Positions 34,051 to 50,799 of a stretch of 64,000 nucleotides of DNA are shown here, in pieces (within the stretch, counting starts at the first letter, position 1; each line of letters opens with the position of its first letter). The position numbers and the translations under genes are program-made. The notes under the pieces were generated by a model. It was not told the origin of the DNA, did no database searches, and saw only the letters and a program-made list of their open reading frames with translations. The stretch covers positions 186,001-250,000 of IMG/VR virus record IMGVR_UViG_3300032236_002285. One strand, 5' to 3'.

Positions 34051-34054
34051 CTAA

Positions 34055-34404: not shown

Positions 34405-34432
34405 CAAATATTAGATTATTAAAAAAATAAAA

Positions 34433-35065: not shown

Positions 35066-35074
35066 AAATAAATT

Positions 35075-35202
35075 GGGGATGTAGCTCAGTGGTAGAGAAA
35101 ACTATCTCTTTTGAAAATTTACCTCATAAGAGTGTTGATTGAGAGAGTTACTTCGTATATTTTGAAATTATAAGGTCGTGGGTTCGAATCCCACCATCCC
35201 CA
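35075..35202 (+). tRNA. tRNA (anticodon probably UGA) interrupted by ~55-60 nt structured insert
   Basis: GGGGATG/CATCCCC acceptor, canonical D and T arms, insert ending TTACTTCG; anticodon assignment uncertain. Confidence 0.6.
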
Positions 35203-35281
35203 CAAAAAAGATTTGGTAAATCAATAAAAAAGATTTACTTTTGTAAAAACAAAGAAAAGAAAATTAATATATAATAAAGTT

Positions 35282-35359
35282 ATGAAAACAATTATGCTTA
35301 CATCGAAGTCGTCAAGTAGTCGCTCGTCAAAACCGAGTGAGGTTCGATCGTATTCATAA
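35282..35359 (+). CDS. attenuator leader peptide 2 (Ser/Arg)
   Basis: MKTIMLTSKSSSSRSSKPSEVRSYS; 10 Ser and 2 Arg in 25 aa; promoter 35212-35243. Confidence 0.85.
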   Translation: MKTIMLTSKSSSSRSSKPSEVRSYS

Positions 35360-35382
35360 TATTCGTATAAAGATATTTTATG

Positions 35383-35415
35383 AAACCCTCGAACTTAATG
35401 TTTGAGGGTTTTTTT
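35383..35415 (+). terminator. attenuator terminator 2
   Basis: AAACCCTCGAAC-ttaat-GTTTGAGGGTTT followed by T run. Confidence 0.9.
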
Positions 35416-35426
35416 GTTTTATATAT

Positions 35427-35501
35427 GGTTCTATAGTTTAAATGGATAAAACACTCGGCTACGAACCGAGAGACGTGAAGGTTCGAATCCTTCTGGAACT
35501 A
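35427..35501 (+). tRNA. tRNA-Arg(ACG)
   Basis: CTCGG-CTACGAA-CCGAG. Confidence 0.9.
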
Positions 35502-35507
35502 CAAATT

Positions 35508-35598
35508 GGAGAAGTCAACCGAAATTGGTATCGGCCTAGTCTTGAAAACTAGTCATCGGCGATGAGTTGGTGTGTCGGTTCGAGTCCGACCTTCTCCG
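35508..35598 (+). tRNA. tRNA-Ser(UGA)
   Basis: CTAGT-CTTGAAA-ACTAG, long V arm, G73. Confidence 0.9.
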
Positions 35599-35603
35599 CA
35601 ACC

Positions 35604-35689
35604 GGAAGGAGTCCGAATGGACGAGGAACTTGTCTTGAAAACAAGCGGCTGTAAAAGGTTTGGGGGTTCGATTCCCTCTTCTTCCGCCA
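35604..35689 (+). tRNA. tRNA-Ser(UGA)
   Basis: CTTGT-CTTGAAA-ACAAG, G73, CCA. Confidence 0.9.
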
Positions 35690-35691
35690 AT

Positions 35692-35777
35692 GGAGAGTAA
35701 AGTAGCCAGGGTGCTACCACCGCCTGCTAAGCGAGTGGCCCATTAATTTGGGTGTGATTCGAGTTCACTGCTCTCCG
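35692..35777 (+). tRNA. tRNA-Ser(GCU)
   Basis: CGC-CTGCTAA-GCG, long V arm, G73. Confidence 0.85.
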
Positions 35778-35789
35778 CAAAAGATAACT

Positions 35790-35876
35790 GGAGAGTTGTC
35801 CGAGTGGTTTATGGAGCACGCTTGGAAAGCGTGTGTACTCGAAAGGGTACCGAAGGTTCGAATCCTTCACTCTCCG
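35790..35876 (+). tRNA. tRNA-Ser(GGA)
   Basis: CACGC-TTGGAAA-GCGTG, long V arm, G73. Confidence 0.9.
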
Positions 35877-35891
35877 CAAAAAAATTATATT

Positions 35892-36194
35892 ATGGATACA
35901 AGATATTTGACAAGACCAACATCATTTGAAACTACATTAGCTATTCTACAAGAATTGCTAAGTGAAAGATTATCACCGGAATGGAGGAGAATTTGGGTGC
36001 AAGGGTCTAATTCTGGTAGAACAAGATTCTGCTTTACTATATTTCCCAATACTGGAACATATACGATGAGATTTCATGATGTTGGTTCGTTTAGACAATT
36101 TAGAACCGATGGTGAATTAGAATCTGAATTTGAGCTATTAAATAGATTTATTACTTCTTTATCTGAAGGTGTATTAAAAGACATAATTATCTGA
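35892..36194 (+). CDS. hypothetical protein
   Basis: Start reassigned to ATG 35892; the upstream extension in the ORF track overlaps tRNAs. Confidence 0.55.
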   Translation: MDTRYLTRPTSFETTLAILQELLSERLSPEWRRIWVQGSNSGRTRFCFTIFPNTGTYTMRFHDVGSFRQFRTDGELESEFELLNRFITSLSEGVLKDIII

Positions 36195-36292
36195 AATTAA
36201 GAAAGGCTTTACTAATATATAGATTTATGAAAATTTTATCTATTTTAGTAAAGCCTTTAATTATGTATGTTAATTGGAGAATTAAATCTAGG

Positions 36293-37801
36293 TTAACTAA
36301 CCATTGATATCATAAACCAAGATCCTCCTCCATTTTTAAGAATTGTTATTGAACCATAATTACTATTTATGGTTTTTGCACCAGTTGAACCATCAATAGT
36401 TTCACCTAAATGTGGAGTTATAGTAATATTATTAGAACTTGCATTACCCGCTTCGTCTTTTATAATAACTATTTTACCATCTGTTAAAGTAGCAACACTT
36501 GCTAATGTTATACTAACAGATGTAGCAGTAGTATCTACCGGCCAATACTCTGGTTGAATTGATGGTAGTGCTAGAGGTGTTAATATAAAGCCAGATGGTG
36601 CTGAGATTGATGGATTAACAATAGGTCCGCCACTAACACCTGAAACACCTGAAGTACCGGATGAACCAGATGATCCGGAAACACCAGTTGATCCAATTTT
36701 ACCATCGTAATTCCAACTTATAGTATAAATATCTTCATCTATCAAAGTTACATTTGCTGGAGTAACCGATGATGCTGAACCTGATATTGTAAGATATGAA
36801 TAACCACCTGATACATTTTTAGCAACACTACCTCCTGTATTTTTGTTAATGGTATAGATACCTATAGGATCATTTGCTCCAAATCTTTTCAATTGAATAT
36901 AAGCCACTCTTCCTCTAAAAACTTGGTTGTATAAATCATCTAATAAATAATAATAGTCTGTTCCAACATAATCAAGTTGACCTATTGTTATTTGAGTTAA
37001 TGTTGTTACGTCAGTTGTATCAGTGTGAAAATGGTTAGGGTTATAAAGAGAACTTGAATACTTCCATCTACCTGAAAGTGCAGCACCATCATTACCACTT
37101 ACTCCTGATGAACCGGATGAACCCGATACACCACTTGTGCCTGAACTACCTGATGTGCCTGAACTACCAGATGAACCTGATGAACCTGATGAGCCAGACT
37201 GACCCATAGTTACCCAACTAATTGAATAGTTTTTACCACCTATTGCCATTCCATTTGATGAAACCTTAGTACAGTTAAAATTCCAAGAAGAACCCATATC
37301 TAAACCATTATTAACTTGGTAAATAACATAGTTATTAGCAGCATCGATCTGAGTTATCTTCATATATCCTTGATTTGGATAAGAAGTTAAAAAACTTCCT
37401 AAAGATGCTAACCAACTTGTGGCATCACCGCTTTCACTATAATAGTTTATATTAACATTATTACTTACTTGAGAAAAATCTGTATTACCTAAATTATATT
37501 GACCATTAATAGAATTGCTACCATAAACCCATCTTAGTGTATTAGAGCCATCAGCGCCACTTAAACCCGAAGTTCCTGATGAACCATTAGGACCAGTAGC
37601 ACCAACATGACCTGAGGTACCTGATGAACCTGATGAGCCAGATGACCCACTTCCACCACCACCTGAACCTATTACGGTAACATTACCTGATGTATCTTTT
37701 TGTTTAAGTACTCCGTCTAGATCTAGACCCATTAAAATACCTGATGACGGAGTTGCTGCTCCGGACATATCAATATAAGTAGAAAGTGAAATTAAACTCA
37801 T
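36293..37801 (-). CDS. Ser/Gly-repeat fibre-like (tail fibre/decoration) protein
   Basis: Three blocks of SGSSG/SGTSG/SGVSG repeats; TAATATATA at 37826-37834. Confidence 0.7.
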   Translation of the reverse strand: MSLISLSTYIDMSGAATPSSGILMGLDLDGVLKQKDTSGNVTVIGSGGGGSGSSGSSGSSGTSGHVGATGPNGSSGTSGLSGADGSNTLRWVYGSNSINGQYNLGNTDFSQVSNNVNINYYSESGDATSWLASLGSFLTSYPNQGYMKITQIDAANNYVIYQVNNGLDMGSSWNFNCTKVSSNGMAIGGKNYSISWVTMGQSGSSGSSGSSGSSGTSGSSGTSGVSGSSGSSGVSGNDGAALSGRWKYSSSLYNPNHFHTDTTDVTTLTQITIGQLDYVGTDYYYLLDDLYNQVFRGRVAYIQLKRFGANDPIGIYTINKNTGGSVAKNVSGGYSYLTISGSASSVTPANVTLIDEDIYTISWNYDGKIGSTGVSGSSGSSGTSGVSGVSGGPIVNPSISAPSGFILTPLALPSIQPEYWPVDTTATSVSITLASVATLTDGKIVIIKDEAGNASSNNITITPHLGETIDGSTGAKTINSNYGSITILKNGGGSWFMISMVS

Positions 37802-37870
37802 CTATAATAATTTTTTTTATTACTCTATATATTATTTTGTTAAATGGCTTTTATATTTTATATTTGTGGT

Positions 37871-38272
37871 ATGGGACATTGTATATCAGTATATCTAATG
37901 AATAAATCAGAGTTAAGAGACGAAAAGATTAGCTCTATACTAGATAATAAAGAAAAAAGTAAACAAATAAAATGGACTGAGCTACCAAAAGGTATTTTAG
38001 CAACTACTTATATTCCTAATGTAAGAGAGTTTGGTAAAGATAAAACAATTGCTAAAATATCAACTGACTACTTTGGTGGTAGTGGTTACCAAGAAGCAAA
38101 ATTATTTATTAATAATAAAAAAGTCTATAACGAATCGGATGAACAAGTAAATTTTGGTATCCGCCCAATCAATGATGTATTGAAAATGATGGGTATTGTT
38201 GCAAATAGTGGCATGGATGAATTTGATACAATCAACCTAAGTAATTACAGAAGTAACGAAGATTTCAAATGA
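37871..38272 (+). CDS. hypothetical protein with RDEKISSIL motif near N-terminus
   Basis: ORF after TATATTTG. Confidence 0.6.
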   Translation: MGHCISVYLMNKSELRDEKISSILDNKEKSKQIKWTELPKGILATTYIPNVREFGKDKTIAKISTDYFGGSGYQEAKLFINNKKVYNESDEQVNFGIRPINDVLKMMGIVANSGMDEFDTINLSNYRSNEDFK

Positions 38273-38427
38273 AAATAAAATTAATCCTAGCAATACCAAT
38301 GCTTCTTTTAGCTACTCTAATATTTAATGAGGTTATCAACAAAGATTATGATATTTGGTATAAAATAATAATTTCAATATTTGGTGCATTTTTTATCTAT
38401 GAACCAATTAGAATTCTTTTACATAAA
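38269..38427 (+). CDS. small two-TM membrane protein (52 aa)
   Basis: Hand translation MKIKLILAIPMLLLATLIFNEVINKDYDIWYKIIISIFGAFFIYEPIRILFT. Confidence 0.55.
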
Positions 38428-38445
38428 ACAAAGTAAATTAGTAAT

Positions 38446-39516
38446 ATGAAAATAAACGAGCAGTTTTTAGAGAGCTATCTTAATAGCAATTCACCAACCG
38501 GATTTGAATACGAGTTAGGTGGTCAAAAAGTTTGGATGGACTACGTTTCCAAATTTGTAAATAAAGTAGAAATTGATAACTACGGCACCGCCTACGGTGT
38601 TATGGGTAATATGGACTCTAAGTTCAAAGTAGTTATTGAAGCTCACTCTGATGAAATTAGTTGGTTTGTAAACTATATTGATTCAAAAGGCTACATCAAA
38701 GTAATCAAAAACGGTGGTTCTGATGCCCAAATTGCTCCTTCTATGAGAGTTAATCTTTGGGGAAGTAAAGGACCAGTTAGTGGTGTATTTGGACACCCAG
38801 CAATTCACATTCATTATCGCAAAGACAAAGTAGATTTAGATTCTATCTTTATTGACGTTGGTGCTTCATCTAAAGAAGAAGTTTTAGAAATGGGTATCAA
38901 TGTTGGTACCGTTGCTACTTTCCAAGACCAATTCATGAAGTTAGGTACAAGTTATTACACTGGTCGTGCTTTAGACAACCGTATTGGTGGATTTATGATT
39001 GCTGAAGTAGCTCGTAGATTAAAAGAAAAAGGTAAAGAATTACCTTACCAATTATATGTTGTTAACTCAGTTCAAGAAGAAATTGGTTTAAGAGGCGCTG
39101 AAATGATTGCTAACACAATCAAACCTAATGTGGCTATCGTAACGGATGTTTGTCATGAAACTTCTTCTCCTTGTTATACCGCTTCTAAAGAAGGTGAACA
39201 CGTTGCTGGTCAAGGTGGTGTTATCACAAGAGCACCGGCTGTTCATAACAAATTAAGACAATTAGTAATTGATACAGCAACTAAGAAAGAAATTCCTTTC
39301 CAATTGGCGGCTTCTTCTCGTTCTACTGGAACCGATACAGATGCTTTTGCTTATTCAAATGGTGGAGTTCCTTCAGTTTTAATTTCACTTCCTCTAAAAT
39401 ATATGCACACAACGTGTGAGACCGTCCACAAAGACGATGTTGAAAATGTGATTAAGTTAATCTACAATACTCTCTTAAAGATTGAAGAAAATCACAATTT
39501 TAAGTATAATGCTTAA
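38446..39516 (+). CDS. M42-family aminopeptidase
   Basis: EAHSDEI, ALDNRIG, VQEEIGLRGA, TDVCH, YMHT motifs. Confidence 0.9.
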   Translation: MKINEQFLESYLNSNSPTGFEYELGGQKVWMDYVSKFVNKVEIDNYGTAYGVMGNMDSKFKVVIEAHSDEISWFVNYIDSKGYIKVIKNGGSDAQIAPSMRVNLWGSKGPVSGVFGHPAIHIHYRKDKVDLDSIFIDVGASSKEEVLEMGINVGTVATFQDQFMKLGTSYYTGRALDNRIGGFMIAEVARRLKEKGKELPYQLYVVNSVQEEIGLRGAEMIANTIKPNVAIVTDVCHETSSPCYTASKEGEHVAGQGGVITRAPAVHNKLRQLVIDTATKKEIPFQLAASSRSTGTDTDAFAYSNGGVPSVLISLPLKYMHTTCETVHKDDVENVIKLIYNTLLKIEENHNFKYNA

Positions 39517-39518
39517 AA

Positions 39519-39552
39519 AGAAAAACCCACTCAACTGAGTGGGTTTTTTATT
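39519..39552. terminator. bidirectional terminator between convergent genes
   Basis: AAAACCCACTC-aact-GAGTGGGTTTT. Confidence 0.85.
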
Positions 39553-39916
39553 AGTATTTAGGTATTTTCATATCTGTTGTAATTTCAATTCTGAAACCAA
39601 ATCCAGTATCATCATCTGAACTATATTTTACTTCAGAGTCGTAACCTCTATTACCATCAAAAGTCATAGGTTTTGGACCATTCATTCTAGCTTTTTTTCT
39701 CATTTCTTCTTCTCTCAACTTGGCTTCTTCTTGAGCAACCATTTCTTCAAATGTTAATCCAGGATTTGAAGGTTGTTGAGGTTCTTCTCTAGTTGAAAAT
39801 TGTTGAGGTTGATGTCCATATTTACGAAGTAGTTGTTCAGCCTCCCAACTATCAATATTAACTGGTGAAGTTTGTTCTTCTTGACTTTGTATAATTCTTA
39901 CTTCTGGTCTGTTCAT
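39551..39916 (-). CDS. hypothetical protein
   Basis: ORF. Confidence 0.65.
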   Translation of the reverse strand: MNRPEVRIIQSQEEQTSPVNIDSWEAEQLLRKYGHQPQQFSTREEPQQPSNPGLTFEEMVAQEEAKLREEEMRKKARMNGPKPMTFDGNRGYDSEVKYSSDDDTGFGFRIEITTDMKIPKY

Positions 39917-39920
39917 AAAA

Positions 39921-40352
39921 TTAATTTATTTTATCTAAATATATTTCATTTCCATATCTATCTAATTCCCAACCCTCTATTGGGTTGTTTTGTAAATATC
40001 GGTAATATATTTTTGTTCTTTGATGTAGTGCATCTTTTTCAGTTCCTTTACCTAAGCCTTTAATAGTTATCATCTGACACCAATCATTCTTACTAATAAA
40101 GTCGGGTAGAATACCATCAAAGATAGTTTTTAATAATCTGAATATATTTGTTTGTACTACTTTGAAAGTCCATTCTTCACCTTCTTTAACACGATAAAGT
40201 ATTTCTGCTTCACCTTCTGGTTTTCTATCTATTTCAACTCTGAATTCATTTTGACCATCTGAGAAAAAATAATAGTAGGTAGCACCTTCGTGACCACCGT
40301 ATTCAAATGTGTAAAACTCAATAGATTCAAATATAGATTTGATGTATTTCAT
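39921..40352 (-). CDS. hypothetical protein with MKYIKSIFES tag
   Basis: TAATATATA at 40357-40365. Confidence 0.7.
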   Translation of the reverse strand: MKYIKSIFESIEFYTFEYGGHEGATYYYFFSDGQNEFRVEIDRKPEGEAEILYRVKEGEEWTFKVVQTNIFRLLKTIFDGILPDFISKNDWCQMITIKGLGKGTEKDALHQRTKIYYRYLQNNPIEGWELDRYGNEIYLDKIN

Positions 40353-40408
40353 AGTGTATATATTAAAACTTTTGTTATTATTAAAGTATAAAATAATAAA
40401 ATATAATT

Positions 40409-40963
40409 ATGGCACATAAAGCACAACAAGATTTTTTTGAAAGCGTCAGAGTTAAATTTCCTGAGTATTTTACCGATGTTAAAGTTTTGGATATTGGTTC
40501 TTTAGATATAAATGGTAATACTAGACACTTTTTAAAACAACCTTACTACTACACTGGTTTGGATTTAGATAATGGTCCTAATGTTGATGTAGTTTGCCCA
40601 GCACATTTATATGATTGTGGATTTCAATTTGATTTAATTATGTCAGGTGAATGCTTTGAACATGATATGTTTTATCCAAAGTCAATAAAAAATCTTGTAC
40701 GTCTTTTAAGAAGTGGAGGATTATTTGTTTTTACTTGTGCGTCCACAGATAGACCAGAACATGGAACTTTAAGAACATCACCAGAGAATGCTCCATTTTT
40801 AGAAAAGTATGGAGAAGAGTGGTGTAGTTATTACAAAAACTTAACAGAGTCTGATATTAGAGAAGTGATTAATATTGAAGAAACTTTTAGTGATTTTTAT
40901 TTTCAAGAATCATTTTCTGGATACATTGGTAATGACTTATACTTTTGGGGTATAAAAAAATAA
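40409..40963 (+). CDS. class I SAM-dependent methyltransferase
   Basis: VLDIGSLDING, FDLIMSGECFEHD, LRSGGLFVFT. Confidence 0.85.
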   Translation: MAHKAQQDFFESVRVKFPEYFTDVKVLDIGSLDINGNTRHFLKQPYYYTGLDLDNGPNVDVVCPAHLYDCGFQFDLIMSGECFEHDMFYPKSIKNLVRLLRSGGLFVFTCASTDRPEHGTLRTSPENAPFLEKYGEEWCSYYKNLTESDIREVINIEETFSDFYFQESFSGYIGNDLYFWGIKK

Positions 40964-40971
40964 AATATTAA

Positions 40972-42660
40972 ATGATATCAGTATTAGTAGTAAACTTAAA
41001 TAATTTAGAATTTACAAAAAATTGTGTTAATGATTTAATGTTACAAGATTGTGAATTCAATCTAACAATTATTGATCAAAATAGTTCAGAAGAAGGAACT
41101 AAAGAATACTTTTCAACACTACCTTCAAATATAGAATTTATACAGAATGGTCAAAACACACATCTAAATCAACTTTGGAATTGGTTTGTAATGAAATCAA
41201 ATACACCATACATATGTTTATTAAACAATGATGTTAGAATTGCTCCTAATTTTTTATCATCAGCAATTCAAGTATTTGAGAAAGAACCAAATGTTGGTTT
41301 TGTTAACCATGTTTCAAATAATAAAGATTATCAAGAATGGTCTAATACGTTAGATTATAAAATAATTGAAACTCCTTATAGACAAGGATGGGATCCAATT
41401 TTTAGAAAAGAGTGTTATAATCAAATACCTCAAGAGTTATCTTTCTTTTATGGAGATGACTACATTTATTCTAAATTATATTCATCAGGAATGAAAGGTG
41501 CTTATGTGTTAAATTCACCTATGATTCACTTTGAAAGAAGTACAACAGTTGGAAAAGGAGGACAAAGAGATGCTTCACCTGATAATTTATATTTTCATCA
41601 ATTAGATTTGGATTATAAAAATATGTCTTTTGTGGAAGAATTAAGTAAATGGAAACCTGAATTTTTAACTTTAAAAAGTAAAAACACAAGAACTTATATA
41701 ACACACGTTACTAGAGATTACTTAGAAGTAGCTCTTAATTTAGCAAAATCAGTTAGATTATTTTCTAACTTACCTTTATTGGTTTATTGTATAAATTTAC
41801 AAGAAGAAGATAAACAAAGATTTGATGAATATGAAAATGTTCAACTTAGAAATGTTGATTTGGATATTTCTGAACGAACATCTGAAGATTACACATCTGT
41901 TGATTCTGGTAACTTTTATATAAATAGATATAGTGCTAGAATTTATAATATTTTATGTGCTAAGACTATTGCTATGGAAATGGCTTTAGAAGAAGGTTGG
42001 GATGAGGTTTGTTATTTAGACTCCGATTGTTTAGCAACGCCTTTAGTTGATGAATTATTTGACTGGATGTCTATTATAACTGACTATCCTATAGCTACAC
42101 AGGGTATTCATGATTATATGATTTGGTTTGAAAATGGTATTGAACTTGGAAATCCTTTTGCTGGTGGATCTTGGCCTAATGTTGATAATAAACTTTGCTT
42201 AGAATGGCCTTTGATGAGTTTCTTAGAAGTTGATGAAAATCAAAGAGGTTCTTATAGAACAACCGGTATAATGTTGATGAACCAGGACTGTTTACCTTTT
42301 ATAAAAACTTGGAGAGAATTTTGTTTTATTTTACCTAAATTAGTTAATATAAGAAAGTATGCTACTTATCACGAAGAAACCATTTATAATGTACTTTCTT
42401 GGAAAAAAACAAATCAAGGGTTTCCACTTTGTTATGTTAATATAGGCGAAGGCTTAGAAACTGTAAAACATTTTTATTCTGATGATGCGGTCGAGGGTAA
42501 ATTAAGATGGGATGATAATGATAATTCAAAAAACTTTTATAAAATTCCAGATAATAAAAGAAACTCTAAAGTTTTACATGGTGAAAAAAGAACATCAGAA
42601 GTTGATTTAATTTTAGACTACCTAGTAGAATTAAAAAATAATAAATATTTTAATGATTAG
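40972..42660 (+). CDS. two-domain glycosyltransferase (GT2 plus second GT-A-like domain)
   Basis: ICLLNNDV and CYLDSD DxD-type motifs. Confidence 0.75.
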   Translation: MISVLVVNLNNLEFTKNCVNDLMLQDCEFNLTIIDQNSSEEGTKEYFSTLPSNIEFIQNGQNTHLNQLWNWFVMKSNTPYICLLNNDVRIAPNFLSSAIQVFEKEPNVGFVNHVSNNKDYQEWSNTLDYKIIETPYRQGWDPIFRKECYNQIPQELSFFYGDDYIYSKLYSSGMKGAYVLNSPMIHFERSTTVGKGGQRDASPDNLYFHQLDLDYKNMSFVEELSKWKPEFLTLKSKNTRTYITHVTRDYLEVALNLAKSVRLFSNLPLLVYCINLQEEDKQRFDEYENVQLRNVDLDISERTSEDYTSVDSGNFYINRYSARIYNILCAKTIAMEMALEEGWDEVCYLDSDCLATPLVDELFDWMSIITDYPIATQGIHDYMIWFENGIELGNPFAGGSWPNVDNKLCLEWPLMSFLEVDENQRGSYRTTGIMLMNQDCLPFIKTWREFCFILPKLVNIRKYATYHEETIYNVLSWKKTNQGFPLCYVNIGEGLETVKHFYSDDAVEGKLRWDDNDNSKNFYKIPDNKRNSKVLHGEKRTSEVDLILDYLVELKNNKYFND

Positions 42661-44239
42661 ATTCGAGCAACCATCAAATGAAAATCCATTTGGAAAAATC
42701 TTAGTAAATATAGATTCAAATTACGATCATTCTTTATTTAAACTACCTTTTACTTTTAAGGTGGTAAATGATATAGATAAACAAGTAAAATGGCAGACTA
42801 ATGATATGCAAAATGGTTGGTGGGCAACTTATGTAGAGCCTTGTAACTCAGAAGCCTTTTTACTTGACTCAATGGATAATATATTATATAGTTGGAAGTG
42901 GGACACAGATAAACATGGTGATAAATCTCATAAATTCTTTTTAGATTGGTGTAAAAAAAATAAAGGGTCTAAAGGTATAGCTATTGGAACACATAATGGT
43001 ACAACAGGTGAATGGGTAGTTCCTGTTATGGATAATCTAATCGAGGCTTATTTAGTAGAAGCATCAGATAAACAATATAGCGAATTAGTTGAAAATTATA
43101 AAAGTAGTTCAAATGCTCATACTATAAAAAGCCTAATAACTTCTGATGGATCGGAAATTGAATTTTTTGAAAGTGAGGATGGATTTACAAATTCAACTTC
43201 AAAAGAACATGTTTTAAAATTTCATAATGATGTTAACTCAGTTATTAAAAAATCAATATCATTGAATGATTTAATAATTCAGTGCGGATTACAAAATGAT
43301 TTAAAATGGTTACATTTAGATGTTGAAGGTATTGATGATGAATTAATACTTAGTCTAGATGATACTAAAGTTAAATTGCCGGAAATAATTATCTACGAAA
43401 GTCTTAATCTAAGTGATGAAAGGAAAAAGAATGTCATTGAGTGGTTAGAATCAAAAAATTACCAATGTGAAGAATCTGGATGGAATACAATAGCTATTTT
43501 GAATAAATTAGATTTATCCTTATTAGTACATACTTGTGATTCTTATGAACAATTTTGGGGTGGTATGTTTTATACTTTAGATTCATACTGGGATTATAAT
43601 ATTCCTGTTTATTTTGCAAATGAAGAAAAAGAAATGTCTGATATAGTTATTGACTGCAAAGGAACACCATATAAACCAGATACAAGAATAAAGCAAATAT
43701 TAACTGGTAAAACTGATAAAAATGGATTCTCAACTAGATTTATTGAAGCAGTTAAACAAATACCAACTAAATATGTTCTTTATATACAAGAAGATATGTG
43801 GTTAAAAAGAGGAATAGATAATAAAGTATTTTCAGATATAATTTCTTTTATGGATGAAGTAAATGCTGACTCTGTTAAAATTCACGCAAAGTTATTTTAT
43901 TATGATAATTATCTTTTAGAACCTACTGAACATTTTATTGATAATCAAAGACTTTTAAAATATTTAGATTGTGACGCTTTATTAACACATAATGCTACAA
44001 TATGGAGAAAAGATTATATTTTAGAACATCAAATACCCGGTGAGGATCCTTGGGTAAATGAAATATCAGGTAGTAGAAGAATGTGCTCGAAAAAACACAA
44101 TCACTATCACTATAATATACATTGGTATTGTCAACCAGGAACAGTTGATAAAGGTGAACCATCTCAAGAATTTGTTGTCTATGCTCATATAGTTGATGAA
44201 ATGAAAAGTATGGAATTAAAATTAAATTTGAAAAAATAA
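42653..44239 (+). CDS. FkbM-family methyltransferase fused to glycosyltransferase-like domain
   Basis: IAIGTHNG...LVEAS...LHLDVEGID; C-terminal VLYIQEDMW. Confidence 0.7.
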   Translation: MIRFEQPSNENPFGKILVNIDSNYDHSLFKLPFTFKVVNDIDKQVKWQTNDMQNGWWATYVEPCNSEAFLLDSMDNILYSWKWDTDKHGDKSHKFFLDWCKKNKGSKGIAIGTHNGTTGEWVVPVMDNLIEAYLVEASDKQYSELVENYKSSSNAHTIKSLITSDGSEIEFFESEDGFTNSTSKEHVLKFHNDVNSVIKKSISLNDLIIQCGLQNDLKWLHLDVEGIDDELILSLDDTKVKLPEIIIYESLNLSDERKKNVIEWLESKNYQCEESGWNTIAILNKLDLSLLVHTCDSYEQFWGGMFYTLDSYWDYNIPVYFANEEKEMSDIVIDCKGTPYKPDTRIKQILTGKTDKNGFSTRFIEAVKQIPTKYVLYIQEDMWLKRGIDNKVFSDIISFMDEVNADSVKIHAKLFYYDNYLLEPTEHFIDNQRLLKYLDCDALLTHNATIWRKDYILEHQIPGEDPWVNEISGSRRMCSKKHNHYHYNIHWYCQPGTVDKGEPSQEFVVYAHIVDEMKSMELKLNLKK

Positions 44240-44997
44240 TGAAACCCAAAGTTAGTGTAATAATACCTTGTTATAATTATGATAAGTATATTGAACAATG
44301 TCTTATGTCTGTTGTTTTGCAAAATCGAGATTTTAATATTGAGGTTTTAATAGGTGATGACAATTCAACAGATAAGAGTATTGAAATTATTGAAAGATTT
44401 AGTAGGTATTATAGATATGATAATTTAAAATATAAAATATACTCACATGATAAAAATTTAGGTGAAATTAATAATACAAAATTTCTTTTAGATAATTGTG
44501 AAGGTGAATATATTGCTTATTTAGATGCTGATGATTACTGGACAGATCCAAATAAATTAAAAAATCAATTAGAGTTTTTAGATAATAATAAAGACTACTC
44601 ACTTTGTATAACAGGCTATATTCAATTAAAAAATGGTGTTGATTATAACCCAAATGTTAATTTTAAAAGCTGGCTTTGCCCTAAAGATATAAATAATATG
44701 AATTCTGATGCTCTGTCTAAAGGTAATATAGTTGGTTCATCATCTTCTAGAGTATTCAGAAATTATAAAGATTTAGTTAAAGATTACTTTTATGATTTTC
44801 CTTATTCAGATTGGGTAATGAATTTTGAATTATCTCTAAAAGGTAAAATAGGTTATTTAAATTTTCCAAGTTATGTTTATCGAATGCATGATAATTCTTT
44901 ATCTACAAAAGATTTACAAGCTGAGAATAAAGAAGAACTATATAATAAAAGAGTTAGTATTTTAAAGTCTGAGCTAAATAAATATCTAAATAATTAA
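44239..44997 (+). CDS. GT2 glycosyltransferase
   Basis: VSVIIPCYN, GDDNSTD, YIAYLDADDYW. Confidence 0.9.
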   Translation: MKPKVSVIIPCYNYDKYIEQCLMSVVLQNRDFNIEVLIGDDNSTDKSIEIIERFSRYYRYDNLKYKIYSHDKNLGEINNTKFLLDNCEGEYIAYLDADDYWTDPNKLKNQLEFLDNNKDYSLCITGYIQLKNGVDYNPNVNFKSWLCPKDINNMNSDALSKGNIVGSSSSRVFRNYKDLVKDYFYDFPYSDWVMNFELSLKGKIGYLNFPSYVYRMHDNSLSTKDLQAENKEELYNKRVSILKSELNKYLNN

Positions 44998-45073
44998 AAA
45001 TTTTATTGTATATTTGTAAAAAATAAGAAAAGGGACTAAACTTTTTTAATATATACACATACAATAAAAACAT

Positions 45074-45145
45074 TGCGGGGTAGAGAAGAGGCATCTCGCC
45101 AGGCTCATAACCTGGAGGTCAGTGGTTCGAATCCACTCCCCGCTA
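45074..45145 (+). tRNA. initiator tRNA-fMet(CAU)
   Basis: 1:72 mismatch, CCAGG-CTCATAA-CCTGG. Confidence 0.85.
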
Positions 45146-45309
45146 CAAATAGAAAGACAGGACAAATATCTGATCAGCCCCAAGAAGGTAGGGTAGAGTA
45201 CTCTGAACAAGTCTTTCTAAGGAATTAAAAAAATATTAAAAATATTTGGTGAAATAAAAATTTCACCGTATATTTGTAAAACAATTAAGAAATTATAAAA
45301 ACTAAAACA

Positions 45310-45387
45310 ATGACAACTATTACTAACATAGCGTATTATTATGAGGGAGAGCGTAGCTCAAACGTCAGACTAATGTCTATGTCGTAA
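45310..45387 (+). CDS. attenuator leader peptide 3 (Tyr/Glu)
   Basis: MTTITNIAYYYEGERSSNVRLMSMS; promoter 45245-45276. Confidence 0.85.
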   Translation: MTTITNIAYYYEGERSSNVRLMSMS

Positions 45388-45409
45388 TGGTTTCATTATG
45401 ATATTTTCT

Positions 45410-45440
45410 AACCCAGTCTGACTTTCAGACTGGGTTTTTT
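45410..45440 (+). terminator. attenuator terminator 3
   Basis: AACCCAGTCTG-acttt-CAGACTGGGTT followed by T run. Confidence 0.9.
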
Positions 45441-45455
45441 GTTTTAAAATAAATT

Positions 45456-45540
45456 GGGAGTATAACGTCAGCGGTGTGTAAGCCGCCCCTAATCAAAGAG
45501 ACGTATAGAGGTAACTTGTGTGCAAATCCAGGTACTCCCA
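45456..45540 (+). tRNA. degenerate tRNA-like element (no resolvable anticodon arm)
   Basis: Perfect GGGAGTA/TACTCCC acceptor and TGCAAAT T-loop-like segment; middle does not fold canonically. Confidence 0.4.
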
Positions 45541-45546
45541 CAAAAT

Positions 45547-45618
45547 GGTCCTGTCGACTAATGGTCAGGTTACAAGACTTTCAATCTTGAGATGCGGGTT
45601 CGATTCCCGTCAGGACTA
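45547..45618 (+). tRNA. tRNA-Glu(UUC)
   Basis: CAAGA-CTTTCAA-TCTTG. Confidence 0.9.
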
Positions 45619-45625
45619 CAAATAT

Positions 45626-45711
45626 GCTACGGTATGCAAACCGGAATAAGCGACCAGACTTTCAATCTGGACATCGAAAGATGTGTGCGGGTTCGAGCCC
45701 CGTCCGTAGTA
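45626..45711 (+). tRNA. tRNA-Glu(UUC) with long variable arm
   Basis: CCAGA-CTTTCAA-TCTGG then ACATC-GAAA-GATGT. Confidence 0.8.
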
Positions 45712-45718
45712 CAAATAA

Positions 45719-45802
45719 GGGAGAGCGCCAACGTTGGAGAGTTGGGCTTGTCTGTAAAACAAGTGGCTTACGCCTGAGTGGGTTCGATTCCCACCTCTCC
45801 CA
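45719..45802 (+). tRNA. tRNA-Tyr(GUA)
   Basis: CTTGT-CTGTAAA-ACAAG, V arm. Confidence 0.85.
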
Positions 45803-46103
45803 CAAAAAATTAAACAAAAAAAATGAAAAGTTGAAAGTGAAAGATGATAATTATGTTGGTAGTTATCTTTTTATCAAAACCAGTAATGTCACAGAACATT
45901 ATTAAATACCAACAAAAAACAAAAATTGATTTGAGATTAAATAAGTCAATTGAAAACCAAAAGGTTCTTTTTAAGAAAACTAAATTAGAATCTGATAACT
46001 TTGAAATTAAAATTAGTCACGATTAGCTGATTAATAAAAAGTTTAGAATCAGGTTTACTTTATGTTTAGACATGAAAGAATTTTTTACCAAAGAGTAAAA
46101 AAT

Positions 46104-46176
46104 GATGCTATCGACTAATGGTTTAGGTCGCCATCCTCTCAAGGTGGAAATACGGGTTCGAATCCCGTTAGCATTA
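46104..46176 (+). tRNA. tRNA-Glu(CUC)
   Basis: CCATC-CTCTCAA-GGTGG. Confidence 0.9.
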
Positions 46177-46241
46177 CAAAAAATTAAACAAATGTTTGGA
46201 TATTAAAAAAGTATCCTTATCTTTGTAAAAGAATAAAAAAT

Positions 46242-46313
46242 GGTCCCGTCGTCTAATGGTTAGGACAATGCCCTTTCACGGCATAGATTTCGGTTCAAAT
46301 CCGTGCGGGACTA
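46242..46313 (+). tRNA. tRNA-Glu(UUC)
   Basis: ATGCC-CTTTCAC-GGCAT. Confidence 0.9.
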
Positions 46314-46402
46314 CAATAAAAACAGATAACTCCGGTATGGTCTCAATCATTACTTAGAACCGGGCTTTGGAAAGTTACAAGTTGAGATTCTGTTTTTTAT
46401 AT

Positions 46403-46485
46403 TGGAAGGTGGCCGAGTGGTTAATGGCGCTTGACTGTAAATCAAGTCTCTTGCGAGTACGGGGGTTCGAATCCCTCCCTTCCAA
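46403..46485 (+). tRNA. tRNA-Tyr(GUA)
   Basis: CTTGA-CTGTAAA-TCAAG, V arm. Confidence 0.9.
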
Positions 46486-46550
46486 CAAAAATAAAAAAAA
46501 TTAAAAGGGAAGACAAAACTTTTTATATATACATTAATATAATTAAAACG

Positions 46551-46631
46551 ATGAAAAATTTAACTAACATATCAACAGCAATCATAGGAGGCGGCGCGGG
46601 AGCGAATGTCACTGGCTGGACTATGTTATAA
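46551..46631 (+). CDS. attenuator leader peptide 4 (Gly/Ala/Ile)
   Basis: MKNLTNISTAIIGGGAGANVTGWTML. Confidence 0.85.
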   Translation: MKNLTNISTAIIGGGAGANVTGWTML

Positions 46632-46655
46632 TCTTTCATCAAAAGAATTAAACGT

Positions 46656-46688
46656 AACCCAGTCAGTGAAAATTGACTGGGTTTTTTT
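46656..46688 (+). terminator. attenuator terminator 4
   Basis: AACCCAGTCAGT-GAAA-ATTGACTGGGTT followed by T run. Confidence 0.9.
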
Positions 46689-46692
46689 ATTT

Positions 46693-46776
46693 CGGCAGGT
46701 ACCGATGGTGTCTTATACACACTATAACCGTAGCGGGAAGTTGAAAACGTGGGTTCGAATCCCACCCTGCCGACCA
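46693..46776 (+). tRNA. D-arm-deficient tRNA-like gene, anticodon UAU (Ile-like)
   Basis: CGGCAGG/CCTGCCG acceptor, A73-CCA, canonical T arm, GGTGT-CTTATAC-ACACT, long V region, almost no D arm. Confidence 0.5.
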
Positions 46777-46836
46777 ACTGAGAAAACAGTAAATCGTGAG
46801 CCAACACTAAAACCATCCCACCAGGATGTAAAACTC

Positions 46837-46908
46837 GCGGGTATCGTATAGTGGCTATTACTCCTTCCTTCCAAGTAGGAGACGTCGGTTCGATTCCGGC
46901 TACCCGCT
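46837..46908 (+). tRNA. tRNA-Gly(UCC)
   Basis: Loop CT-TCC-AA; GCG acceptor, U73. Confidence 0.9.
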
Positions 46909-46916
46909 CAAATTTT

Positions 46917-46991
46917 GGGGTCACATGTACCAAGGCTAGGCGATGATGCTTTGCAAGCATCGTGTGGTGAGTTCGATTCTCACTGGCTCCA
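46917..46991 (+). tRNA. tRNA-Ala(UGC)
   Basis: GATGC-TTTGCAA-GCATC; G3:U70. Confidence 0.85.
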
Positions 46992-47010
46992 CAAAAAATG
47001 AATAGTAAAA

Positions 47011-47178
47011 ATGACTATATTCAAATATTTAGTAGATGGAAAACTTTACTTCTTGTACAATGGAGTAAATGGATATATTGCTATACCATTTGAGCATAGT
47101 GGAAATACTATATCAAATCCAAATCTTGATGAATTTGTACCAGTGAAAATGGGCAATGGTTCTGATGGATTTGTATAA
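47011..47178 (+). CDS. small hypothetical protein (55 aa) inside tRNA array
   Basis: Hand translation MTIFKYLVDGKLYFLYNGVNGYIAIPFEHSGNTISNPNLDEFVPVKMGNGSDGFV. Confidence 0.5.
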   Translation: MTIFKYLVDGKLYFLYNGVNGYIAIPFEHSGNTISNPNLDEFVPVKMGNGSDGFV

Positions 47179-47181
47179 AAT

Positions 47182-47256
47182 GCGAAAGTCGTATAGTGGC
47201 TATTATATCAGCTTGCCAAGCTGAGGACGGCAGTTCGATTCTGCTCTTTCGCTCCA
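47182..47256 (+). tRNA. tRNA-Gly(GCC)
   Basis: TCAGC-TTGCCAA-GCTGA; U73-CCA. Confidence 0.9.
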
Positions 47257-47260
47257 ATAT

Positions 47261-47298
47261 GCCGGATGATCCACCGTTGAATCGCGGTGCCGGCTCCA
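47261..47298 (+). ncRNA. tRNA minihelix-like element (acceptor plus T-like arm, ends UCCA)
   Basis: GCCGG/CCGGC and CACCG/CGGTG stems, TTGAATCG loop. Confidence 0.5.
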
Positions 47299-47372
47299 GG
47301 GGAATTAGCTCATTTGGCTAGAGCGCTTGTCTGGCAGACAAGAGGTGACGAGTTCAAATCTCGTATTCTCCA
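47299..47372 (+). tRNA. tRNA-Ala(GGC)
   Basis: CTTGT-CTGGCAG-ACAAG; G3:U70. Confidence 0.9.
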
Positions 47373-47379
47373 CTAATAA

Positions 47380-47459
47380 GCGGGTGTCGTATAGTGGCAC
47401 GTAGTAGATTATGCCGGTCTTCCAAACCGGAGATGTGAGTTCGATTCTCATCACCCGCT
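47380..47459 (+). tRNA. tRNA-Gly(UCC) with enlarged D-loop
   Basis: CCGGT-CTTCCAA-ACCGG; U73. Confidence 0.85.
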
Positions 47460-47461
47460 CA

Positions 47462-47605
47462 AAGATAGTAGTAATGTACGAGTGTTACTTCGTATTTCCA
47501 ACGACTAGTTCAGGTTCGAATCCTGGGTTCCGCTCAAATGATAATATGCGGGATTAGTGTAACGGTAGCACAGTAAAAACACACTCAGCAAATTTTCTCT
47601 ATCTT
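47462..47605 (+). tRNA. circularly permuted tRNA (Gly-type acceptor) flanked by the split insert module
   Basis: 3' half (anticodon, T arm, GTTCCGC-T) at 47491-47534 precedes 5' half (GCGGGAT plus D arm) at 47548-47574; flanks pair AAGATAG/CTATCTT and GAGTGT/ACACTC. Confidence 0.7.
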
Positions 47606-47609
47606 ATTA

Positions 47610-47679
47610 GGGCCAGATGCCAACGGCAGGTCAACTCGCTTGCACCGAGATTGTTTGGGTTCGATTCCCACTGTGTCCA
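47610..47679 (+). tRNA. degenerate tRNA-Ala(UGC)-like gene
   Basis: CTCG-CTTGCAC-CGAG; G3:U70-like pair; bulged acceptor. Confidence 0.5.
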
Positions 47680-47835
47680 CTATATTTATTTTTCATAGCT
47701 ACCTAAACTTCAATATATTAATTATATATATACCATTAGATTAGATTAAAGAAAGGTTTTTAGACAGTTTAGTATTTTTAGATTAAAGAATGACTTGAAG
47801 TTAGACAATTAACTAAAAAATAACTATGCTAAAAA

Positions 47836-50799
47836 ATGAAAAAGATCCTAAAGTTCTTACTAGTGTCATTGACTCTAGTATTTTTTGTGCCTAAACAAGC
47901 ACAAGCCTCTCATTGCGCTGGAGCTGAATTATTATTCCAATGGCTTCATGACTCAACTTATCAACTTTATTACAAGTTTTACCGTGATTGTGCCGGTATT
48001 AATGAGCCAACAAATGTTACAGTTTGTTGTAGTAACAATTGTAATTCAACTACAATCAACGTAATTTTAAACAAAGTTACTACACTTATTCCTCCTGGTG
48101 TAAATAATGGAAATGAAGTTGCTAGAGTTTGTCCTGGTATACATACCACTTGTGGTAATCCAGCCGGAACAACACCTGGCTACAGAGAATGGTGGTATGC
48201 TAATACTGTAACTCTACCATCAAGATGTAACCACTGGACTTTTTCAGTAAGTCAGTCAGCTAGAAACTCTGGTATTACTAATTTATCTAATCCAGGTTCT
48301 CAAAATCTTTATACAGAAGCCACACTTGATAATAGAGATGCTCAAGGTGATACCTCACCTTTCTTTTCTGTTAAGCCGGTCCCGTATATCTGTGCTAATA
48401 TACCATACACTTATAACAATGGAGCTTATGACTTAAATAACGACTCTATGGTGTTTAAAATTGTTCAACCAAATGGTGGCTCAGGTTGTCCTCCAACCAC
48501 GTCAGCCATTGCTTTTGCTAATACAACACCAAGTTTAAATCTAACTGATAATCCTTTACAAACAAACAATACTTTTTCTATAAATGCTCAAAATGGATTG
48601 ATGAGTTTTACTCCAGCTGGAACACAAATTGCAGTTGTAACTATTCAAGTAGATGAATATAGAAATGGTAGAAAAATTGGTTCTGTAATGCGTGATATTC
48701 AAATTATTGTTTTGTCTTGTAATGTTCAGCAACCAGAAGTAAATATATCTGCTGCTTCTTTAAATAATGCAACTCTTGATAATAATGGAAACATTACAGC
48801 TTGTGCTGGAACACCTTTTAGTTTTTGTTTTGATGCTACAACACCAGATTCAAATGGTATTTTACTCGCATCTGATAACTCAAATATTGTAATGCCTAAT
48901 TCAGTAGTATCATATACTAATCAAACTACAGATACGGTTACTGGTTGTTTTTCTTGGTGGCCTTCTGTGTATGATACAGGTTATAAAATTTTTACAATAA
49001 CTATAATGGATTCATCTTGTCGTCCTCCTGGCTTAATGTTTTCACAAACATTTACCTTACCAATTTATGTTTGGCCTGCGACTAATATTCTAAGTGATAC
49101 CACAATCTGTAGAGGTGGTGCTGCAAATTTACTTGCTGTTGGTGGTGGAAATTTTATTTGGTCGGTTTTACCAGGAGGTTCTGCTTTATCAACTTTAAAC
49201 TGCACAAACTGCTCAAATCCAGTTGCTACTCCAATAATCACAACTCAGTATGTAGCTACATCTCAAATAACAAATGCTATTTGTAAAAATAAAGATACGG
49301 TAACAGTAGCGGTTATTCAACCATTTCAGATTATACTACCTGATACAACAACATGTGTTAATAATTCTTTACAATTAAATGCAGTAGTTAATACAACAAA
49401 TAATTATACTATATCCTGGACACCAAATACTTATTTAAGTAATGCTGGTATTAATAATCCAATTGTAACACCACCATCTGGTCAATCATTGATAACTTAC
49501 TATGTTAAAGTTTCTTCAATTGGTTCATCAGCTTGTTCAGTTACAGATACATTCAAATTAAAAGTTTTACAAGGATTTACTATCTATAATCATGATACAA
49601 CAATTTGTCTTGGTAAATCAGTAAATATAGCCGGCTCTGGTGATGCTTTATATAATTATACTTGGACACCAACCAGTGGTATAAGTACAATACTTACACC
49701 ATCAATAACACCAAATGTAGTTACAACAACAACGTATATTTTAACAGGTAAATATCCTGGTTGTAAAGATTCTACTAATAAAATTAAAATCACAACAGAA
49801 CCTGTACCAACTGTAGTAGCTGGTGCTGATAGACAAATATGTAGTGGTGATACTATTCATCTTACACCTTTAGTTACTCCAAGTTATCCATATGTTTACA
49901 CTTGGACACCAGGATCTTCATTAGATAATCCAAATTCTGAATTTGCTATCTTTTCAGGATTAATCACAACTCATTTATCACTAACTGTTAAATCACCAGT
50001 TGCTAATTGTTCATCAGCTGATAGTTTAATTATTAATGTAGTTAAACAATCTTTCTTAAAGGTTTCACCACAAGACACTTCAATTTGTCCATCTGATACA
50101 GTTATGATTAAATTAACCACACCTAATGATAAGTTAGTTATTTTTAATTGGAGCCCTCATAATTTTATCAGTGATTATAATTCAGTTAATCCTTATTTAT
50201 ACCCACCAACATCAATGGTTTATACTGCTTGGGCTACTGATACAGCTGGTTGTAATGATACTATATCAGCTTATATTGAAATTAGACCAGGTGCTGTAAT
50301 TGACATGCCTACATCAATTGGTTTATATCCTGGTGATTCTTATCAAATAACACCTCAAACTAACTGTACTAAATTTATTTGGTTTCCATCAAGTGGTTTA
50401 AATTATGACTCATTATCAAATCCAACAGTGACCAACTTAGGAGTTAATACTAAGTATATAGTTATTGGTCAAACAGAATGGGGATGTAAAGTATCTGATT
50501 CAATAAATGTAATGGTTATTAATGATTCTTATATTGATATACCTAATGCTTTTTCACCTACAGGTGATCACAATAAAACACTAAAAGTAATTCATTTAGG
50601 TTCTGCTACTCTTGAATATTTTAGAATATACAATAGATGGGGTAATAAAGTTTTTGAAACAAATGATATTAATGTTGGATGGGATGGTACTTATAATGGT
50701 CAAGCTCAATCACAAGGTGTTTATGTTTATGAAGTAAAAGCAATAACATATAAAGGTAGGGTCTTTATTAAACAAGGCAATATAACTTTGATGAAATAA
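47836..50799 (+). CDS. secreted adhesin-like protein with T9SS type-B (gliding motility-associated) C-terminal domain
   Basis: Signal peptide, ASHCAGAE start, Ig/PKD-like repeats, IPNAFSP...FRIYNRWGNKVFE...WDGTYNG...GVYVY...GNITLMK. Confidence 0.9.
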   Translation: MKKILKFLLVSLTLVFFVPKQAQASHCAGAELLFQWLHDSTYQLYYKFYRDCAGINEPTNVTVCCSNNCNSTTINVILNKVTTLIPPGVNNGNEVARVCPGIHTTCGNPAGTTPGYREWWYANTVTLPSRCNHWTFSVSQSARNSGITNLSNPGSQNLYTEATLDNRDAQGDTSPFFSVKPVPYICANIPYTYNNGAYDLNNDSMVFKIVQPNGGSGCPPTTSAIAFANTTPSLNLTDNPLQTNNTFSINAQNGLMSFTPAGTQIAVVTIQVDEYRNGRKIGSVMRDIQIIVLSCNVQQPEVNISAASLNNATLDNNGNITACAGTPFSFCFDATTPDSNGILLASDNSNIVMPNSVVSYTNQTTDTVTGCFSWWPSVYDTGYKIFTITIMDSSCRPPGLMFSQTFTLPIYVWPATNILSDTTICRGGAANLLAVGGGNFIWSVLPGGSALSTLNCTNCSNPVATPIITTQYVATSQITNAICKNKDTVTVAVIQPFQIILPDTTTCVNNSLQLNAVVNTTNNYTISWTPNTYLSNAGINNPIVTPPSGQSLITYYVKVSSIGSSACSVTDTFKLKVLQGFTIYNHDTTICLGKSVNIAGSGDALYNYTWTPTSGISTILTPSITPNVVTTTTYILTGKYPGCKDSTNKIKITTEPVPTVVAGADRQICSGDTIHLTPLVTPSYPYVYTWTPGSSLDNPNSEFAIFSGLITTHLSLTVKSPVANCSSADSLIINVVKQSFLKVSPQDTSICPSDTVMIKLTTPNDKLVIFNWSPHNFISDYNSVNPYLYPPTSMVYTAWATDTAGCNDTISAYIEIRPGAVIDMPTSIGLYPGDSYQITPQTNCTKFIWFPSSGLNYDSLSNPTVTNLGVNTKYIVIGQTEWGCKVSDSINVMVINDSYIDIPNAFSPTGDHNKTLKVIHLGSATLEYFRIYNRWGNKVFETNDINVGWDGTYNGQAQSQGVYVYEVKAITYKGRVFIKQGNITLMK

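Follow-up and report, generated by a model that had tools for sequence, protein, structure and literature searches.

A predicted leader-peptide attenuator in front of the Glu/Tyr tRNA genes of a huge phage of Bacteroidota

Leader-peptide attenuators of amino-acid operons (E. coli trpL, hisL, pheL and leuL, and the multivalent thrL and ilvL) consist of a promoter-proximal short ORF with clustered regulatory codons, followed by a mutually exclusive leader hairpin (segments 1:2), antiterminator (2:3) and intrinsic terminator (3:4), of which a stalled ribosome selects the antiterminator; several amino acids may be sensed by one leader, as in thr (Thr, Ile) and ilvGMEDA (Leu, Val, Ile). The mechanism is summarized in PMC1183508 and PMC3082878. 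The E. coli pheST attenuator (pheM leader) and the Bacillus hisS/hisZ His-leader (PMC2965389) control in this way a component of the translation apparatus that is specific for the sensed amino acid, i.e. aminoacyl-tRNA synthetase genes in cellular genomes. T-box riboswitches also sense the state of a specific tRNA pool and switch between a terminator and an antiterminator upstream of translation-related genes, but bind uncharged tRNA directly through one specifier codon and the T-box bulge, without translation. Phages carry their own tRNAs (tRNA-Tyr, tRNA-Lys and others), which can replace host tRNAs that are depleted or cleaved (T5 tRNA-Tyr against retron Eco7 PtuAB, PMC11555353; phage tRNAs that evade anticodon nucleases, PMC10264068); no regulatory device that senses the depletion was described in those papers.

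As interpreted here, the locus follows the logic of the trp, his, phe, leu, thr, ilv and pheST leaders. It differs from the amino-acid operon leaders in that the regulated genes are tRNA genes, so that the output directly replenishes the sensed molecule, in that it is carried by a virus, in that several paralogous units, each matched to a tRNA cluster, occur per genome, in its use of Bacteroidota-type signals without a Shine-Dalgarno sequence, in that the antiterminator segment and the stop codon lie inside the 3' strand of the predicted leader hairpin, and in the absence of sequence similarity to any Rfam leader family. It differs from the pheST and hisS/hisZ elements in that the tRNA genes themselves are controlled, in a phage; from T-boxes in its translated-ORF signature and the lack of a T-box motif; and from the phage tRNA systems above in the cis-acting sensor in front of the tRNA genes. 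The E. coli tRNA-Phe genes pheV and pheU, tRNA genes for an amino acid whose other genes (pheA, pheST) are attenuated, were examined as a possible precedent and rejected: only about 105 nt separate the upstream gene from either gene, and the sequence upstream of pheV has no leader ORF or terminator (for pheU, the spacing only was examined). Full-text literature searches found no description of attenuators before tRNA genes, although an earlier description is not fully excluded because the literature covered was incomplete, and the paper that released the related huge-phage genomes (PMC7162821) mentions no attenuator or leader.

The Tyr/Glu leader and its terminator

The window analysed is a stretch of 64,000 nt (30% G+C), identical to part of the 476-kb IMG/VR contig IMGVR_UViG_3300032236_002285. 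ARAGORN finds 22 tRNA genes between 32.7 and 47.4 kb, grouped by amino acid, and Rfam adds several more tRNA-like genes. An earlier note, made from the sequence alone, had described three TAT codons followed by GAG-GGA-GAG in a leader ahead of four Glu and two Tyr tRNAs, an eight-nucleotide segment in the leader that is the exact complement of one in the terminator 5' arm, and a Glu(CUC) tRNA downstream; this observation is correct in every detail. The features of the locus are summarized in Table 1.

Table 1. Features of the Tyr/Glu unit (att3) and of its three sister units (att1, att2, att4) in the window; all are on the + strand.
Feature	Position	Description
Promoter, Bacteroidota-type	45245-45276	-33 TTTG (45245-48), 20-nt spacer with an inverted repeat (45247-45268), -7 TATATTTG (45269-76)
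5' UTR (inferred)	45283-45309	about 27 nt, A-rich, unstructured, no Shine-Dalgarno sequence, no other ATG upstream; transcription start inferred from the -7 box, not mapped
Leader ORF	45310-45387	ATG at 45310, 25 codons plus TAA (45385-45387): MTTITNIAYYYEGERSSNVRLMSMS
Regulatory codons	45334-45351	TAT x3 (45334-45342), GAG GGA GAG (45343-45351); Tyr x3, Glu, Gly, Glu
Leader hairpin (1:2, anti-antiterminator; predicted)	45309-45397	5' part of the ORF, including ACTAACATAG and the Tyr/Glu codons, pairs with the 3' part, including CTATGTCGTAATGG around the stop; encloses and partly sequesters R2
Antiterminator segment R2	45364-45371	GTCAGACT; exact reverse complement of AGTCTGAC (45415-45422); duplex -13.1 kcal/mol
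Inner hairpin (predicted)	45379-45404	closes the antiterminator loop; contains the stop codon
Intrinsic terminator	45410-45442	12-bp stem, 6 G-C (45410-21/45425-36), 3-nt loop, T-rich tail; 5' arm segment 45415-45422 is the partner of R2
tRNA-like gene	45457-45541	acceptor stem GGGAGTA/TACTCCC; starts 16 nt after the T-run; not called by ARAGORN or Rfam
tRNA-Glu(UUC)	45547-45619	
tRNA-Glu(UUC)	45626-45712	87 nt, long variable arm
tRNA-Tyr(GUA)	45719-45803	
tRNA-Glu(CUC)	46104-46177	
Promoter	46195-46225	additional promoter of tRNA-Glu 46242 and tRNA-Tyr 46403
tRNA-Glu(UUC)	46242-46314	
tRNA-Tyr(GUA)	46403-46486	
att1	32458-32620	leader MRTNNTHKHFSKSNKWFSNQFG... plus terminator; His, Phe, His, Phe, Trp, Trp, then Lys x4 tRNAs downstream
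att2	35282-35416	leader MKTIMLTSKSSSSRSSKPSEVRSYS plus terminator; Arg(ACG) and Ser x4 tRNAs downstream
att4	46551-46690	leader MKNLTNISTAIIGGGAGANVTGWTML plus terminator; Gly and Ala tRNAs downstream (Ile(UAU) as well in relatives)

The features are unlikely to have arisen by chance. At least five Tyr/Glu in some six-residue window of a random 25-residue peptide have a probability of about 0.0014 with the composition of the window's proteome and of 0.0008 for random-nucleotide ORFs, and no such window occurs in 16,155 residues of the long ORFs of the 64-kb stretch. A duplex between the post-core ORF segment and the terminator 5' arm as good as that observed appears in 0.8-2.7% of shuffles, and the whole RNA 45300-45445 folds with z = -6.4 against dinucleotide shuffles.

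The genes that would be directly controlled are the tRNA-like gene and the Glu, Glu and Tyr tRNA genes at 45547-45803. Relatives have a non-canonical tRNA-Tyr(GTA)-like gene at the position of the tRNA-like gene. The spacing leaves no room for a promoter after the terminator; in homologs, the gap from terminator to first tRNA is 10-22 nt, so that the tRNAs can only be transcribed through the terminator. No other + strand terminator was found before that of the next unit (46656), so that read-through may also reach Glu(CUC) and can reach the last Glu and Tyr genes.

A scan of 32000-48000 against 4,227 Rfam families (E <= 1) gave no leader, T-box or riboswitch family for any of the four units. 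The only overlapping hit at att3 was the trpB motif (45325-45446), with 30 bits against a gathering score of 59 (E = 0.98). Weak Phe, Leu and Thr leader hits at 39451-39606 represent a plain bidirectional terminator between convergent genes.

Homologs, sister units and predicted folds

The flanking glycosyltransferase ORF (44239-44997) is not conserved in the GenBank relatives and could not be used for synteny; homologs were therefore found with DNA patterns. A total of 25 distinct homologous DNA sequences (21 distinct peptides) was obtained from related huge phages and metagenomes; these come from one phage clade, so that the counts are not independent events. All start with ATG and keep an in-frame Tyr/Glu core, while the positions and order of the codons drift (YYYEGE, SYESYYEE, GYEAYEY, SYEAYEYEYE, YYYESYEE and others) and synonymous codons vary across the cores (TAT 76, TAC 2, GAG 42, GAA 23). 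In a MAFFT alignment, 76 of 79 gap runs inside the ORF are multiples of three, against 14 of 70 after the stop codon. Translation of the leader is inferred on these grounds. The codon counts also show that the proposed link between GAG and tRNA-Glu(CUC) is not specific. A Gly codon sits in the core of att3 although no Gly tRNA is in this cluster.

RNAalifold on 21 homologs recovered only the terminator, with compensatory changes at 4 of 11 pairs; the leader part aligns too poorly for a consensus, and covariation of the antiterminator was examined instead with per-sequence duplexes and a cross-pairing permutation. In every one of the 25 homologs, a segment 12-20 nt after the last core codon and 13-22 nt before the stop codon is complementary to the terminator 5' arm, and where the terminator sequence differs, this segment differs in step. 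The pairs observed were GTCAGAC/GTCTGAC, TAGTTGATG/CATCAACTA, TAGTTGAT/ATCAACTA, GACTTGG/CCAAGTC, GACTGG/CCAGTC, and TGTCAGAT/ATCTGACA. Pairing each segment with its own terminator class gave the lowest summed energy of all 720 permutations.

Folding was examined for the transcript truncated just after the terminator's 5' arm and loop, with the ribosome footprint forced unpaired. With any Tyr or Glu codon in the A site, the 8-bp helix between R2 and the terminator arm forms together with the inner hairpin, and this antiterminator was obtained in 25 of 25 homologs. R2 starts 13-30 nt after the A site of these codons and ends 14 nt before the stop codon; a ribosome parked at the stop covers it only partly, 6 of 8 pairs still being predicted as a weak remnant, and pairing was weaker in this state in 22 of 25 homologs. 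Units att1, att2 and att4 behave in the same way, and show the same layout of the inner hairpin.

With no ribosome, the leader hairpin of the window forms, the terminator arm stays free, and the terminator forms on completion. In the leader-only folds, about 62% of R2 nucleotides are paired on average. However, the leader hairpin and the antiterminator are close in energy in many homologs, and the result flips with or without the 5' UTR and between homologs: without the 5' UTR, or in many homologs, the antiterminator is on average 3 kcal/mol more stable than the leader hairpin once the terminator arm is out. Both strands of the hairpin are nearly invariant across homologs, which gives conservation but no covariation support, and whether a 1:2 pairing sequesters R2 when no ribosome stalls is thus left undecided by these folds. 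Default termination would rest on the order of co-transcriptional folding and on the translating ribosome covering R2, neither of which is demonstrated by equilibrium folding.

The window holds four units of the form promoter, short ORF, terminator and tRNA cluster, and in each the leader is rich in the amino acids of the tRNAs that follow (His/Phe/Trp/Lys, Ser/Arg, Tyr/Glu and Ile/Gly/Ala). Relatives add a fifth kind, MKTMNLNMNLNTLTVVNNTLCIR..., before Asn/Leu/Val/Ile/Thr tRNAs, and a sixth kind, MNFRIINMIQEQMQQIQNLIGGTISY, rich in Met and Gln, precedes Met/Gln tRNAs in the 735-kb phage LR756501. In a matrix of five leader families against five tRNA sets, the cognate enrichment on the diagonal is 2.0-, 2.4-, 1.6-, 2.3- and 4.2-fold over the proteome background, and the true assignment is the best of 120 permutations. 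Across the loci collected from GenBank, IMG/VR and a metagenome scan, all 114 units of a strong terminator within 450 nt upstream of a tRNA carry such a leader ORF.

Interpretation as ribosome-mediated attenuation

The interpretation in the earlier note, a leader-peptide attenuator, is supported by the present analysis, with the qualifications given above on the genes directly controlled and on the GAG codons. Of the features required of such an attenuator, the short ORF behind a promoter, the cluster of cognate codons, the intrinsic terminator ahead of the regulated genes, the mutually exclusive antiterminator, and the geometry (with only partial occlusion at the stop codon) are present. We consider it likely, with fairly high confidence, that the element is a ribosome-mediated transcription attenuator that gates a phage tRNA gene cluster. 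In this view, host RNA polymerase starts at the Bacteroidota-type promoter and a ribosome begins translation of the leader. If charged tRNA-Tyr and tRNA-Glu are plentiful, the ribosome would run over R2 to the TAA, the terminator hairpin would form, and transcription would stop before the tRNAs; with no translation at all, the leader hairpin would hold R2, with termination again as the result. If charged tRNA-Tyr or tRNA-Glu is scarce, the ribosome would stall on TAT-TAT-TAT-GAG-(GGA)-GAG, open the leader hairpin and leave R2 free to pair with the terminator 5' arm as it emerges, helped by the inner hairpin, and polymerase would read into the tRNA-like gene, two tRNA-Glu and tRNA-Tyr. The product relieves the stall, so that the circuit would be a direct negative feedback on tRNA supply, and these tRNAs are probably made only when ribosomes run short of them.

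The anatomy of the unit, its conservation, the covariation and the match between leaders and tRNAs rest directly on sequence and comparison, whereas translation of the leader, ribosome stalling, transcription-translation coupling (not established for Bacteroidota) and the signal in vivo are inferences. All evidence is computational; the dependence of read-through on leader translation and on the supply of charged cognate tRNA was not measured. What depletes the tRNAs in nature is open; candidates are a codon-usage mismatch between a 30% G+C phage and its host, decay of host tRNAs during infection, and host tRNA-cleaving defences.

Three other explanations were considered, each of which we regard as unlikely. 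The promoter-ORF-terminator arrangement is a complete gene on paper, and the conserved N-terminal motif (T/N)NI and C-terminal MS/ML might suggest a stand-alone micro-gene for a small functional peptide with a constitutive terminator, the tRNAs being expressed in some other way. However, there is no room for a promoter between terminator and first tRNA, the peptide composition changes from unit to unit exactly with the downstream tRNA identities, the conserved N- and C-terminal codons are the two strands of a predicted RNA helix, and the segment complementary to the terminator arm co-varies with it, none of which is expected for an independent peptide gene. An RNA-only switch, like a T-box or a protein- or ligand-binding leader, that senses uncharged tRNA or another factor directly and uses the codons as untranslated specifier sequences, would be consistent with the alternative terminator and antiterminator structures and with conservation of parts of the leader at the nucleotide level beyond what coding needs; against it are the conserved ATG and stop codon, the indels in multiples of three, the presence of 5-9 cognate codons for two amino acids at drifting positions rather than one specifier, the lack of a T-box or other Rfam match, and the leader length of only about 130 nt.

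A leaky, constitutive terminator, which merely sets a fixed low tRNA output or insulates transcription units, with the ORF and the complementarity as evolutionary by-products, is conceivable because phage genomes are rich in terminators (11 strong + strand terminators in the window) and because the antiterminator helix is short (8 bp). Four of these 11 terminators, however, sit immediately before tRNA clusters, each with a matched leader, and the 114 leader-bearing units, the covariation and the composition match also argue against this reading.

Why phages carry tRNA genes has been debated for about 50 years, with codon compensation, replacement of degraded host tRNAs and evasion of tRNA-cleaving defences among the proposals. 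A sensor in front of each tRNA cluster that reads the availability of exactly those charged tRNAs would mean that the phage makes its tRNAs on demand, and makes the question directly testable, as to which condition de-attenuates which cluster. It would also extend leader-peptide attenuation to RNA genes, to viruses, and to Bacteroidota-type expression signals, which implies working transcription-translation coupling there, and would supply a set of compact, amino-acid-specific sensors of translational stress.

A further, doubtful possibility is that the attenuators form an inducible counter-defence and supply circuit: when host anticodon nucleases, or infection-induced decay of host tRNAs, deplete particular tRNAs, ribosomes would stall on the matching leader and the phage would switch on exactly that cluster of replacement tRNAs, so that a virus would monitor the host's tRNA pool codon by codon through six or more dedicated sensors. 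The rescue of infection by phage tRNAs from tRNA-Tyr- and other tRNA-targeting defences (PMC11555353, PMC10264068) makes host tRNA-cleaving defences attractive as the cause of the depletion, but there is no evidence here for the link to a tRNA-Tyr-cleaving nuclease raised in the earlier note, and host tRNA cleavage as the trigger is untested. Many of the tRNAs have unusual architectures, such as long variable arms in tRNA-Lys and tRNA-Glu, D-arm insertions and odd anticodon loops, which might resist cleavage.

Host signals and distribution

The nearest GenBank relatives of the window are the uncultured huge phages LR756502.1 (642 kb) and LR745206.1 (635 kb); Bacteroidetes hosts are predicted for the phages above 634 kb, which are placed in the Mahaphage clade (PMC7162821). 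Two features of the window agree with that host. The promoter pattern TTTG-N18-21-TAnnTTTG occurs 14 times against 3.3 expected, with sites before att1, att2, att3 and tRNA-Glu 46242, and the att3 promoter is conserved in 4 of 5 aligned homologs; furthermore, a 987-residue ORF carries a type IX secretion CHU_C sorting domain. The att4 pattern has no match in 185,579 prokaryotic species-representative genomes, but is present in 60 metagenome and 6 IMG/VR stretches.

Leader units and promoter-region elements

Three sister attenuators of the window carry leaders matched to the His/Phe/Trp/Lys (att1), Arg/Ser (att2) and Ile/Gly/Ala (att4) tRNA clusters, and all three show an antiterminator when a ribosome is masked at cognate codons. 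Two further leader classes are found in relatives (loci L007, L005 and L072): MKTMNLNMNLNTLTVVNNTLCIR... precedes Asn/Leu/Val/Ile/Thr tRNAs, and MNFRIINMIQEQMQQIQNLIGGTISY precedes Met/Gln tRNAs in the 735-kb phage LR756501. Weak Rfam hits to the Phe, Leu and Thr leader families elsewhere in the window represent only a bidirectional intrinsic terminator between convergent genes. The coordinates of these and the other features are summarized in the table.

Coordinates of the features (window positions, unless a locus of a relative is named)
Feature	Coordinates
Sister attenuators	32458-32620, 35282-35416, 46551-46690
Further leader classes in relatives	L007 41159-41325; L005 12808-12980; L072 17256-17390
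Inverted repeats in promoter spacers	45247-45268, 32373-32393, 35215-35236, 46198-46216
Second conserved motif	32438-32452, 45040-45055, 46518-46531
tRNA-like genes missed by ARAGORN	32630-32712, 32961-33032, 34140-34410, 35075-35205, 35690-35780, 45457-45541, 46675-46776, 46919-46991, 47380-47680
tRNA-Lys and tRNA-Glu with long variable arms	33872-34138, 45626-45712
Histidyl-tRNA synthetase-like ORF	34433-35065
HNH endonuclease ORF	33175-33717
Structured element with T-run	46315-46400
ORF with CHU_C sorting domain	47836-50799
Weak Rfam leader hits (bidirectional terminator)	39451-39606

The promoters before the attenuators carry an inverted repeat inside the -33/-7 spacer, the sequence of which differs between promoters and homologs while the pairing is kept; this repeat could be an operator, or a hairpin that ends upstream transcripts. 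Furthermore, a second conserved motif, (AAAGGGA...)ACTTTTT(0-2)ATATATA, occurs 3 times against 0.05 expected; it lies directly before the att1 ORF, tRNA-Met 45074 and the att4 ORF, is also present in relatives, and may be a phage-specific promoter.

Unusual tRNA and tRNA-like genes

Many tRNA-like genes are missed by ARAGORN, and these include a His(GTG)-like gene with a large D-region insertion, Trp(CCA), Ser(GCT), two genes with inserts of about 60 nt, and one (at 45457) with an 8-nt anticodon-type loop. The tRNA-Lys genes (84-88 nt) and one tRNA-Glu gene (87 nt) have long variable arms, which is unusual for these identities; the feature is conserved in the related huge phages. A structured element ending in a T-run, with no convincing ORF, lies between tRNA-Glu 46242 and tRNA-Tyr 46403, and may be a different kind of control or processing element.

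Protein-coding genes among and near the tRNA clusters

A 210-residue ORF resembling only the catalytic core of histidyl-tRNA synthetase (PF13393, E = 2.7e-26) sits among the tRNA clusters, and is about 86% identical in LR745206 and LR756502. An HNH endonuclease ORF with an N-terminal helix-turn-helix is inserted between the His/Phe/Trp tRNAs and the Lys tRNAs. In addition, a 987-residue ORF has a type IX secretion CHU_C C-terminal sorting domain, i.e. a Bacteroidota-specific signal carried by the phage.
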